Shown: piece after piece, positions 21,701 to 25,256 of the stretch | Position numbering within the stretch: position 1 is the stretch's first letter | Layout: the number at the start of each line of letters is the position of its first letter | NCBI GenBank assembly: GCA_033442325.1 | Contig: JAWQFM010000016.1 | Location: forward strand, 61,834 to 125,833 | Direction: 5' to 3' | DNA length: 64,000 nt | From: Salpingoeca rosetta | Taxonomy: Eukaryota; Protista; Choanoflagellata | Notes under the pieces: generated by a model | What the model was told of the DNA's origin: nothing | The model's input: the letters and a program-made list of their open reading frames with translations, nothing else | Databases searched by the model: none | Program-made: the position numbers and the translations under genes

Positions 21701-24700
21701 CTGTCTGTCTGTCTGTCTGTGTGTGTGTGTGCCTCTGTGTGTGTGTGTGTGTCTGTGCCTGTGTCTCTGTATCTGTGCCCGCCTGACTGCCTGTGTGTGA
21801 GTTTCGGCTCTACTCAACCCTTCATATGCCCTCACAAGCTACCACACACACACACATCCAACTCAAATCCTACGCTACAGGACGAACGAGCTGGTGTCAT
21901 GCCTGTCGTCGCTCAAGGTGGCTGCAGGCGTGCTTCGTGACGGCTATGACAAGCATGCGCAGCAACAGGCGAGCGGGGAGGCGCTGCTCTCGCTCAAGGA
22001 CACGGGACTGGCCAGGAACGCAACCGTGTCAGCCACCACCGCCATGCACGGCATCGGCTCTGTCGTCCGGAACCTCAGGTTCGTCGTAACAAGGAGAGGA
22101 AGGACGATGTGCAGTAGTCTCGTGCACGAGTTCGCTTGACTTTGTTGTGTGTTGCTCTTTATTTGCTCGTCTGTGTCGACGGCTGCTCAATGCATGGCTG
22201 CCTTGTCCATAGCCGAAACCCACCGCCTACCTGGGCCGCTGTCTCTTCATCACGCTCGCTGCCCTCACCATCCCTGCATCCTCTTTACTTGCCCTCCACG
22301 CACCCCCCCCCCTTCCATTTGCTCAGGGCGCAAGCGGAGACGGGGCCTGTGCTTGAGCTGGCGCAGCAGCTGGGGGCAAAGGCAGAGTCGTGCGCACACA
22401 ACATTGTCAAGCTGTTCCAGGGCGTCGAGAACGAGATCCCACTCATGGTACTGGCACGTGGTGGTGGTGGTGGTGGTGGTGGTGATAGGTGGTGATCATG
22501 ATCATGGTGGCGGTGGTGATCATGTTCATGATGAGCAGGTTGCACACAGAGCATGGTGCTAACACCACATGTTCTTCCCTCTTCCCTGCATTCCCATATT
22601 CCCTTCCTCCCTTCCTTCCCTTCCTTGGTTCAGGTGACGGCTGGGTACAACGACGCTGTTGGCGACATCACAGCGCTCTCGACACTTGCCGGCGAACTTG
22701 CAATCGTCCTTGATCCAAAAGGTGCAGCGCACGTCCTGTTGTGATGCTTGATTGCTTTGGTTGTATTGATCGTGCTGTGTGTTTCGTTCGTGTTTGCTTC
22801 CTTGCACCTCCACACCAACGTTGTTGTGTGTGCCTTCGTACGTTTGTTTGCTGTGCAGGCGGGCGCGACGGCGCTGCTGCCGATGATGACGATGACGATG
22901 ACGAGTATGAGTACGAAGAGGACGACGACGAAGCAAGGTGGACACCTTCACAAGCATCGTGAACTGGCCTCGCTCGCTGTGCACAATGTCTGCCAAGGCT
23001 TCCCTGCACACGACGCCATGCGTCACCCTCACACATACACACACACGCACACACACGCATACGCACGTGCACGCAGGGCGCTGATGCCATCACGGCTGGT
23101 TGATCTTCCCGCTGGTGGGCGGAACCGGAGCTCGTCGTATCTGGACGAAGCGCTGGCGACGGCGTCCGGTGGCGTTGCTGTTGATCAGGACATTCTCGCC
23201 GCCTTCCACACGGGGACGCGCCTCTTTGTTGAGAAGAGCTTTGCCGCCTGCAAACAGGTCCGCTCATGAGAGCAAGGGCGTGCGTGTACATGTGTGTGTG
23301 TGTGTGTGTGTGTGTGTGTGTGTGTGTGTGTACATGTGTGTGTGTGTACATGTGTGTGTGTGTGCAAGTATCTGAACATTTTGTGCCCTTTGTCAGTTGT
23401 CTTCCTCGTCCTCACACATAAGCACGCCCTCCTCTTCTCATCACTATCGACACCGCCACTGCCACCGCGATCAACAGGACATGAAGACGCTGCTGAGCAA
23501 GTTGCGCGCGCTGCAATCGGACCTCCAGCCCACCTCGGACCTGACACCAGAGATTGTCGACCTCGTGCGCGACGTCGTGCAGAAGGCCCTCCTCCTCCTC
23601 GCAGACACAGAGAAGCTCCAGGTGTGTGTGTGTATGTGTGTGTGTGTGCTTGTACGTGCGGTCAAGCGCTTGCTCAACAGCTACCTTGTCGTTTCTTTCC
23701 TTGCCTGTGACTCACACACTCTGACACACACTCTCTCTCACTTACTCTCTCTCACACTCACTCACTCACTCACCCACTCACTCACTCACTCACTCACTCA
23801 CTCACTCACTCACTCACTCACTCATTCACTCACTCACACACACACACACACTCTCTCTCTCTCTCTCACTTACTCACTCTCTCACTCTCCATCACTCTCC
23901 ATCACTCTCTCAACCTCACACACAAACACACAAACACACAAACTCACTCACTCACTCACTCACTCACTCATTCACACAACATCAGGCCGAGCTGACGGCG
24001 GAGACGGGCGACGACGAAGGGGCAACGCGCACGTTCTACAACAAGAGCTTTGCGCGTGCGCGTGGGCTGGTGCGGCAAGTGCAGGATGTGACGGACGCCG
24101 TCGTGTGGCTGTGCGACAGCTGCAGTCTCGCCGCCGCGGGCCAAGAGGACCTGCCACAGGTGCCCGTGTTGATGGCAATGCGGTTGTTATTGTTGTTCTT
24201 GCTGTCTGTTTCGTTCTTGGTGTCGTTCGTGTCTATAGATGTCTGTATGTCTCTGACTTTTTGCCTCCTGGTTTGTCCCCGCTGCCGTCATCGCCTGCCT
24301 GCCTGCCTGACCAAATTCTTCATGTATGTCGCCTGCCATTCCCTCAACGCCACCACCTCTCCCCCCCCCCCTCCTCTTCCACTCAACTTCCCTCACCCCT
24401 CAACGCCTCTCAGGTGATGACGCGGGGGCAGAACCTGCGCACGAGTGCGGCACATCTGCAGACGGCTGCGGAGTTTAAGGTTGGCCGCCTGGGCCGGGGC
24501 CAGAGCCTCCTCACCGCCGTTAAGGGAAGCATCAGCAAGGTCTACAGCGCAACGGCGGCTTTCACCAAACTGGTGCGTGCGTAGATGTGTGTCTGTCTAT
24601 GCCACTGCGATGGCACCGGTTTCATTCGTTCAAAGCGACACAACACCTGCCGCCTCAGCCTCTCCTGTTCACGCTGCCCCCCCCCCCCCCCCACTTTGCA

Positions 24701-25256
24701 GTGCCAAGAGCAACTGGCCAAGCAGACGAAGCAGCGTGCGTCTGCGCCTGCGGTGAGCATCCCCGACCGTGGCAGCGCCGTTGCTCGCCAGCGCCAGATC
24801 ATGGAGGAGCAAGCCGCCATCATGAGGTCCGAGCGTGTGTGGCTAGTTGGGGGAGAGGGGGGAATGGGGGCTGTGTGTGTGTGTCTGTGTCTGTGTCTGT
24901 GTGTGTGTGTGTGTGTGTCTCTGTGTGTGTGTGTGCGTGTGCGTGTGTGCGTGCGTGTGTGTGTGTGTGCGTCTGTGTGGGTGCGTCTGTGTGGGTGTGG
25001 GTGTGATTGATTCTAGTGAACTGCAACTAGCGGTGCGCGTGTGTTACATTTTTGCAGATACACACCCACACATAAACACACGCACACATCCACTCACACT
25101 CGCACTCACTCACACATAAACGCACATATACACACATACAAACACGCACTCACTCTGAATGACTTGTGTAGGCTGGAGAGCGAACTGGACCAGCGGCGCA
25201 CGACGCTGCACGGGTTGCGGCGATCGCATTACAACTCCCAAACATCCGCCATTTGA
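12763..25256 (+). CDS. KIF14: Kinesin-3, KIF14-like: motor, FHA, coiled coil, KIF1B-type segment, helical region, and C-terminal I/LWEQ-like domain (~30 exons)
   Basis: Motor motifs [82 protein letters not shown] region [44 protein letters not shown] and [19 protein letters not shown] also match. A 7-nt first coding exon (12763-12769) splices in frame to 13058. GT-AG junctions keep phase to the TGA at 25254-25256. Confidence 0.9.

Follow-up and report, generated by a model that had tools for sequence, protein, structure and literature searches.

Here we describe a gene of the choanoflagellate Salpingoeca rosetta that joins a KIF14-type kinesin to a THATCH (I/LWEQ) tail. The gene lies on the forward strand, as do all of its features given below, at 12763..25256 of a 64,000-nucleotide stretch of DNA (hereafter the window; contig 16, 61834-125833, of a 55.4-Mb genome in 68 contigs), and comprises 34 coding exons with 1480 codons followed by TGA. 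From its sequence we identify the last 255 residues of the product as a complete THATCH domain, with a helical-bundle core, a flexible linker and a latch helix, homologous to the domains through which talin and HIP1R/Sla2 bind filamentous actin (F-actin). By that homology the tail would itself bind F-actin, and we put at roughly 0.6 the probability that a single KIF14-type kinesin, with a dimeric THATCH tail bound to F-actin, couples microtubules to actin.

The THATCH tail and its predicted fold

Each of the last five exons of the gene (23478-23621, 23986-24159, 24414-24572, 24702-24826 and 25172-25256) is preceded by AG, and the first four are followed by GT. They splice in phase, as an initial annotation of the window had read them, into a joined frame of 228 codons with TGA at 25254-25256; all of the peptides quoted in that annotation fall within it, and the first exon ends at 23621. 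The start that it gave to the module, 23478, has to be moved upstream into exon 23077-23257, where the conserved module begins at ~23177; its end is at 25253. The whole spliced tail scores 271 bits against a profile of the orthologous tails, with the match starting at residue 1226. The THATCH core (residues 1226-1422; 23177..24734) consists of an upstream helix, helix 2, a short helix with an F-Y motif (the FY helix) and helices 3-5; it is spread over exons 23077-23257, 23478-23621, 23986-24159, 24414-24572 and 24702-24826 and scores 224-229 bits on positions 7-205 of the profile. The linker, the latch (dimerisation) helix and a C-terminal T-S-A-I (residues 1429-1480; 24753..25253) account for a further 44.6-47.8 bits on positions 246-299, the latch helix being interrupted by intron 24827-25171.

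The Pfam family I_LWEQ (PF01608) was the top or only family for three of these exons, in collinear order: profile positions 1-39 match in exon 23986-24159 (18.3 bits, expect value (E) 0.0025), 43-90 in exon 24414-24572 (17.8 bits, E 0.0038) and 131-151 in exon 25172-25256 (16.4 bits, E 0.0096). These pieces were scored exon by exon and not as a spliced whole, so that each alone lies under the cut-off of 27.5 bits, whilst their sum is ~52 bits. A six-frame scan of the whole genome with PF01608 recovered the same three pieces at the kinesin locus; its only other matches were one locus of talin type on contig 2, one of HIP1R type on contig 4 and two weaker loci on contigs 7 and 27. The tail-family profile matched the kinesin locus only, in five collinear pieces, and a second tail paralogue in the genome was rejected on that ground. 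The collinear exon-wise matches, which take in the terminal latch, support the suggestion in the initial annotation that the tail is an I/LWEQ homologue. Not all of the signature residues that name the four I/LWEQ blocks are present; the block-1 and block-4 (latch) regions align well. The block-2 Trp and block-3 Glu had been called degenerate, and they are indeed Arg and Pro, respectively, in the S. rosetta gene. Most orthologues keep the block-3 Glu, and the block-2 position (talin W2389) retains its Trp only in Stephanoeca.

When the tail-family profile was searched against all Protein Data Bank (PDB) sequences, it matched talin R13-DD (9az6, E 1.8e-10), the HIP1R THATCH core (1r0d, E 3.2e-10), talin R13 (2jsw), full-length talin, Sla2 (9hdd, E 1.2e-4) and the talin dimerisation helix (2qdq, E 0.0087), the last of which aligns to the last helix of the tail. 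An AlphaFold2 model of the tail of the Choanoeca flexa orthologue (predicted local distance difference test (pLDDT) 78) runs from an upstream helix through helix 2, a short helix and helices 3-5 to a disordered linker and a long last helix. The top five PDB matches that Foldseek returned for this model are all THATCH entries. With VIA-align, it superposes on HIP1R 1r0d with Z 20.0 (root-mean-square deviation 3.4 over 183 residues) and on talin R13 with Z 17.1-17.6 (17.4 for 2jsw). Other helical bundles reach Z 10.4 at most, except for the unrelated 3ay5 at 15.9. The C. flexa model is thus predicted to have a helical-bundle core of THATCH topology.

These results allow us to reject, with near certainty, the view that the tail, as alpha-helical sequence, resembles I/LWEQ by chance or through its composition. 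Such a view could draw on the sub-threshold scores of the single exons and on the middling structural scores that helical bundles achieve against many folds. However, the three exon matches are collinear, full-length orthologues pass the Pfam cut-off, and the significant profile matches among solved structures are to talin, HIP1R and Sla2 only. Moreover, most unrelated bundles fall 5-10 Z units short of the THATCH entries, the exception being 3ay5 (see above).

Dimerisation was modelled with two copies of the latch of the Barroeca monosierra orthologue (57 residues, with controls), which is ~72% identical to S. rosetta over the last 69 residues. The predicted homodimer scored 0.50 against 0.00 for the best control, with 100% of the contacts common to the runs and a pLDDT of 78. 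Among solved structures, 21 of 30 pairs of one chain attain the mark used for such scores and none of 23 single chains does so, and the pass may come from the predictor's memory of solved relatives. The contact pairs show a constant residue sum, which suggests an antiparallel latch pair as in talin 2qdq. Both the 2qdq match and the predicted Barroeca homodimer therefore point to a dimerising latch helix.

One gene from motor to tail

The nearest protein in public collections is a 1571-residue gene model of B. monosierra (P0001), of which residues 9-1571 map collinearly on the window in ~30 pieces from 13057 to 25253 (tblastn). The S. rosetta gene model was obtained by threading the frame through those GT-AG pairs that best reproduce the sequence and length of this orthologue. 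Nearly every junction had one clear solution, with a peptide of the orthologue's length or a few residues off, and the final model has 34 exons and 33 introns removable in phase with 0 internal stops. Its first exon has 7 bases (12763-12769) and opens with an ATG, the start that the initial annotation had chosen; GTGAGT comes next at 12770, and the acceptor is at 13057. The junction near 21605/21881, about which doubt had been expressed, has a clear in-phase solution of the orthologue's length or close to it, and the gene is collinear across it. The model aligns to P0001 with 61.6% identity over 1449 columns and to the C. flexa orthologue P0014 with 45.6% identity in one alignment (1-1480 against 1-1494; both blastp), and the order and length of its segments agree with the orthologues end to end.

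Two regions of the model were altered along the way. An extra motor exon was placed at 13681-13767, and an exon at 22998-23257, which runs through a CA repeat, was dropped in favour of an acidic-linker exon at 22859-22937 and an exon at 23077-23257, so that the acceptor after the linker exon is at 23077 rather than 22998. With exon 22859-22937 in place, the score of the junction went up from 135 to 198. Two donors are ambiguous, namely that of exon 20578-20763, situated within a GT repeat, and a GC donor at 17977. Many introns of the gene start with GT repeats and finish with CA or CTCA repeats (for example 23622-23985, 24827-25171, 12770-13057 and 20764-21459), and for this reason several donors can be in phase and models can read into the repeats. 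The Barroeca protein has a low-complexity insert of ~74 residues within its tail (P0001 residues ~1429-1502), which is missing from S. rosetta and all other orthologues and is therefore probably a retained intron in that gene model.

The locus could alternatively be read as two transcription units, one for the motor and one for the tail, or as a source of alternative isoforms, with the fused frame an artefact of gene modelling. Searches of the protein collection did not find the annotated S. rosetta protein, a gap that together with the few ambiguous junctions leaves this reading some room. Nevertheless, we consider it very improbable, because all 33 of the 33 introns can be removed in phase without a stop, because each segment matches the orthologues in order and length, and because motor and tail occur together within single assembled transcripts of four other choanoflagellate species. 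Several RNA-like runs of S. rosetta also argue, indirectly, against separate units, since the shares of sampled words that they hold are near the exon shares, both for 19800-25400 (0.32-0.36 of words; exon share 0.37) and for 23478-25256 (0.35-0.36; exon share 0.39). The unbroken frame and the end-to-end orthologue alignment thus favour the proposal that 12763-25256 is a single gene for motor and tail.

Orthologues that combine kinesin, FHA and I_LWEQ domains in one protein, most of them also with 4HB_KIF14, amount to at least 10 distinct sequences. They come from B. monosierra, C. flexa, C. perplexa, Hartaetosiga balthica and Stephanoeca diplocostata, from a cluster with a Bicosta minor member and from four environmental proteins; we take these species to cover both choanoflagellate orders, Craspedida and Acanthoecida. 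Four of the sequences derive from transcriptome assemblies, and 3 of these 4 are marked as complete open reading frames. I_LWEQ scored 46.3 and 49.4 bits in the two full-length orthologues that were scanned (P0001 and P0014), whilst for the remaining orthologues the domain was taken from precomputed Pfam records. Eleven tails in all align well. The motor-THATCH fusion is thus, to judge from these proteins, the choanoflagellate form of KIF14 and not peculiar to S. rosetta. A search of the protein collection with the Barroeca tail gave no match except the Barroeca protein itself, and no relatives of the tail were found beyond choanoflagellates and animals, in word-based searches that may miss others. 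The initial annotation knew I/LWEQ from talin and HIP1/HIP1R/Sla2 only and not from kinesins. This no longer holds for the databases, given that motor-I/LWEQ proteins occur across choanoflagellates and that the S. rosetta genome also has an apparent SH3-I/LWEQ gene (see below); it does hold for the literature searched, as full-text searches for LWEQ in kinesins and for KIF14 in connection with THATCH, choanoflagellates or talin-like domains turned up no description of such a kinesin. The architecture is therefore visible in databases, through the automatic Pfam labels of the orthologous proteins, and undescribed in the literature searched.

A conserved C-terminus was observed amongst the aligned tails, 10 of the 11 ending in T-[ST]-x-I (25242-25253 in S. 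rosetta) and one environmental protein in S-N-L. The T-[ST]-x-I end has, as a motif, the form of a class I PDZ ligand. The vertebrate KIF14 C-terminus, I-Q-W-V, is a proven ligand of the Radil PDZ domain, as shown for human KIF14 (PMC3518219), and ending in a PDZ ligand may be an ancient character of KIF14.

Ahead of the tail, the product has the organisation of a KIF14-type kinesin. A basic N-terminal extension of ~117 residues, rich in Ser/Thr-Pro (18 K+R, 10 D+E, nine S/T-P sites), lies within exon 13058-13448 (part of 12763..13400); its nine Ser/Thr-Pro sites and basic charge would suit proline-directed (cell-cycle) phosphorylation. The motor domain and neck follow in exons 2-12 (13400..16564), with collinear exon-by-exon matches to Pfam Kinesin (PF00225) over profile positions 43-318, three exons alone exceeding the cut-off (52.7, 38.7 and 61.0 bits). 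The nucleotide-binding motifs, read directly in the exons, are intact: the P-loop at 14117-14140, switch I at 15217-15231 and switch II at 15487-15504. Next come a kinesin-associated region and an FHA domain (16441..17977, FHA at ~17450-17602), recognised through Kinesin_assoc pieces of 21.3 and 25.8 bits and an FHA match of 24.7 bits (cut-off 20.7), and a long charged stalk. Residues 1007-1167 (21535..22863) appear to form a helical bundle homologous to the KIF14 four-helix bundle, scoring 135.7 bits against a joint choanoflagellate and animal KIF14 profile of that region. Pfam 4HB_KIF14 (PF23313, cut-off 27) gave 28.4 bits with C. flexa P0014, 23.6 bits with Barroeca P0001 and no match in an exon-wise scan of the S. 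rosetta genome; in the PDB, the profile of the four-helix-bundle region matched designed proteins only. Between bundle and THATCH lies the acidic linker exon (22859..22937), rich in Asp and Glu and with two Tyr, which was placed by the junction score and by an acidic stretch at the same place in the orthologues. When the non-motor part of C. flexa P0014 was used as a query, all matches after the choanoflagellates were to animal KIF14 (E 1e-65 to 1e-37), followed by KIF1/unc-104-type kinesins at E 1e-18 or weaker, in a ranking by expect value. Motor motifs, Pfam Kinesin, FHA and these relatives all agree with the earlier naming of the gene as a KIF14-type kinesin, and we identify it on sequence grounds as the choanoflagellate orthologue of KIF14, a motor of the kinesin-3 family.

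The candidate actin-binding surface

Residues of the S. rosetta tail were placed on talin by composing two HMMER alignments, from S. rosetta to the family profile and from there to talin chain 9az6_F, the talin number being the chain number + 2295 (checked on W2389 and K2443). In talin, latch and dimerisation are both required for actin binding (PMC11831117, PMC2168396), and the most conserved exposed residues of the latch are Q2505, L2509, E2512, L2515, R2519, R2526 and Y2530 (PMC2168396). S. rosetta has Q, M, E, L, R, R and Y at these positions, so that 6 of the 7 are kept, and these include Q2505, E2512, R2519 and R2526, which contact actin in a talin complex solved by cryo-electron microscopy at 2.9 Å (PMC11831117). 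The dimer core of the latch (I2501, L2515, L2522 and I2525) reads I, L, L and L. G2392 and K2445 of the core are kept as well; V2444 to F, I2502 to M and L2509 to M are conservative changes, and R2513 is replaced by S. Among the kinesin tails, the FY helix, helices 3-4 and the latch are the most conserved parts and the linker is the least conserved.

Several observations weigh against actin binding by the tail, or at least thin out the case for it. The Trp of the block-2 core (W2389) is Arg in S. rosetta and most orthologues, Q2437 is His, A2518 of the latch core is Arg, and K2443 is Glu in S. rosetta and Glu or Asp family-wide. In talin, the substitution K2443D lowers actin co-sedimentation to 43% of wild type (PMC2168396). 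The homologous tail region of animal KIF14 has no reported actin binding, the vertebrate site being in the N-terminal extension (PMC3981176). Moreover, the structure and dimer predictions were made on orthologues that stand in for the spliced S. rosetta protein, and a single motor-tail transcript in S. rosetta is argued from the open frame and the orthologues.

Some of these observations would also be expected if the tail were a true THATCH domain, fused to the motor, that no longer binds actin and serves instead as a dimerisation module on which cargo or a regulator docks, with its PDZ-ligand-like end. The changes at W2389, K2443 and Q2437 fit such a module, as do animal KIF14, which has just a diverged, latch-less core and binds actin through another region, and the conserved T-[ST]-x-I of the choanoflagellate tails, in view of the Radil ligand at the human KIF14 C-terminus (PMC3518219). 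However, the kinesin latch retains the actin-contacting residues of talin in addition to its dimer core. Conservation also centres on the region of helices 3-4 and on the latch, and charge around the K2445 position is kept, the local net charge being similar because talin D2447 and Q2448 are replaced by Gly and Arg. We therefore regard the loss of actin binding as the less likely outcome, albeit one to be taken seriously.

Returning to a tail that binds actin, we propose that the latch helices of two chains would pair antiparallel, as in talin, and that the resulting dimeric THATCH would bind F-actin with its latch and with the face of helices 3-4. The motor heads would meanwhile hold or walk on a microtubule, and one polypeptide would thus couple both filament systems. 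Animal KIF14/NabKin bundles F-actin and is needed for cytokinesis, and by analogy the kinesin would most likely act at the cleavage furrow, at the midbody or in intercellular bridges. In End4p, a rod-like bundle (Rend) directly before the THATCH domain forms a force circuit with it, and stable THATCH-actin binding needs ~7 pN (PMC11476202). The order of helical bundle, acidic linker and THATCH in the kinesin parallels the order in End4p. Since force strengthens THATCH-actin bonds in End4p and talin, pulling by the motor might switch on actin binding by the tail, although force gating of this kind is speculation by analogy.

Animal KIF14 and other THATCH proteins

Pfam records for animal KIF14 show no I_LWEQ, and the region after the four-helix bundle (e.g. 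P0049:1376-1607) is without a name in the Pfam copy used. A nemertean KIF14 nevertheless gave a weak I_LWEQ match (16.8 bits, profile 1-96) directly after its four-helix bundle. Aligned profile to profile, animal and choanoflagellate tails match with an hhalign probability of 94% (E 1.2e-7) over 186 columns spanning helices 1-5, and the animal tails end ahead of the latch helix. A rodent KIF14 tail, modelled with AlphaFold2 (pLDDT 76.5), is predicted as a helical bundle that in the PDB best matches the HIP1R THATCH and talin R13 cores; the alignment behind this model held choanoflagellate rows, which may have biased it. A profile of animal KIF14 tails alone matched no THATCH structure by sequence. 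Animal KIF14 thus appears to keep a diverged THATCH-like core without a latch. As the animal tails align with the THATCH core and lack the latch, a tail of bundle plus THATCH is most simply ancestral to KIF14, one that choanoflagellates have preserved well and that has eroded in animals.

Xenopus NabKin and human KIF14 are found on the contractile ring, are needed for cytokinesis and bundle F-actin, an activity located in their disordered N-terminal extension; NabKin was noted by the authors to have no homology to known actin-binding motifs (PMC3981176). S. rosetta kinesin shares with animal KIF14/NabKin the motor, FHA domain, kinesin-associated region and N-terminal extension and, to judge from the joint profile, the four-helix bundle. 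It differs in having the latch, which is absent from the animal proteins, whose actin-bundling site is N-terminal, and in ending in T-S-A-I where vertebrates end in I-Q-W-V. We tentatively suggest, as a scenario with perhaps one chance in three or rather less, that KIF14 of the choanoflagellate-animal ancestor bound F-actin by a C-terminal bundle plus a THATCH domain taken from the HIP1R/Sla2 or talin lineage. In choanoflagellates this tail would have persisted as a force-gated coupler, whilst in animals the latch would have disappeared, a cryptic core would survive in every KIF14 and the N-terminal extension would have taken over actin binding.

Of the known THATCH domains, those of HIP1R/Sla2/End4p (1r0d, 9hdd) resemble the kinesin tail in the arrangement of core and latch and include its best structural match (Z 20.0). 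End4p also has its Rend bundle directly before the domain (PMC11476202), as the kinesin has its helical bundle. An F-Y-x-K motif in the short helix that precedes helix 3 is common to HIP1R and the kinesin tail; this helix is present in HIP1R and missing in talin (PMC2168396). This motif and the slightly better HIP1R scores hint at a HIP1R/Sla2-like source. HIP1R/Sla2 differs in having an ANTH domain and a clathrin-binding coiled coil where the kinesin has a motor, and compared with it the kinesin tail has Arg for the block-2 Trp and Glu for the first Lys of K-V-K. The S. rosetta genome has its ANTH match on contig 4, next to a separate I/LWEQ, and its talin-like I/LWEQ on contig 2. Talin actin-binding site 3 (R13 plus the dimerisation helix; 2jsw, 2qdq, 9az6) gave the profile match of E 1.8e-10; the conserved exposed residues of its latch, including the four actin contacts, are kept in the kinesin tail, and the antiparallel dimer of 2qdq is the arrangement predicted for the kinesin latch. 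The FERM head of talin and its rod of 12 bundles are not found in the kinesin, nor is the FY helix of the kinesin tail found in talin.

Motors that bridge microtubules and actin are known in other forms. The CHO1 isoform of MKLP1 and myosin-10 (Myo10) are two of them (PMC3981176). As is proposed for the kinesin described here, each of these carries the sites for both filaments in one polypeptide; CHO1 uses an extra exon and myosin-10 a MyTH4-FERM module. The plant calponin-homology kinesins are another such class, which uses a calponin-homology (CH) domain for the same arrangement in one chain. None of the three is known to use THATCH.

Elsewhere in the genome, an apparent SH3 plus I/LWEQ gene was observed on contig 7 (1733000-1742999, minus strand; open reading frames at 6956-9382, 5998-6816 and 4333-5421). 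It has an 808-residue open exon with an SH3 match (30 bits) and, downstream, I_LWEQ matches to profile positions 2-32 (18.2 bits) and 107-150 (42.3 bits, above the cut-off); no ANTH match was found near this locus. Given that this gene joins SH3 to I/LWEQ, THATCH has seemingly been shuffled more than once in the lineage. On contig 27, at ~604744-604839 on the minus strand, a short open frame between CA repeats has a weak latch-like match to I_LWEQ profile positions 106-137 (20.4 bits).

Cytokinesis depends on KIF14, a protein also studied in cancer and microcephaly, and yet the C-terminal bundle that follows its four-helix bundle has no name in the copy of Pfam used. The present findings raise the questions of whether the remnant in animals is an actin or force sensor and whether the N-terminal actin site is a replacement. 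Genetic tools exist in the choanoflagellate lineage, so the tail can be tagged and truncated there in vivo. THATCH has been treated as the actin anchor of two families, talin in adhesion and HIP1R/Sla2 in endocytosis. A THATCH domain borne by a motor would be a third context, conserved in choanoflagellates and traceable in animal KIF14, and, if it holds true, the module would have been reused for microtubule-actin coupling.

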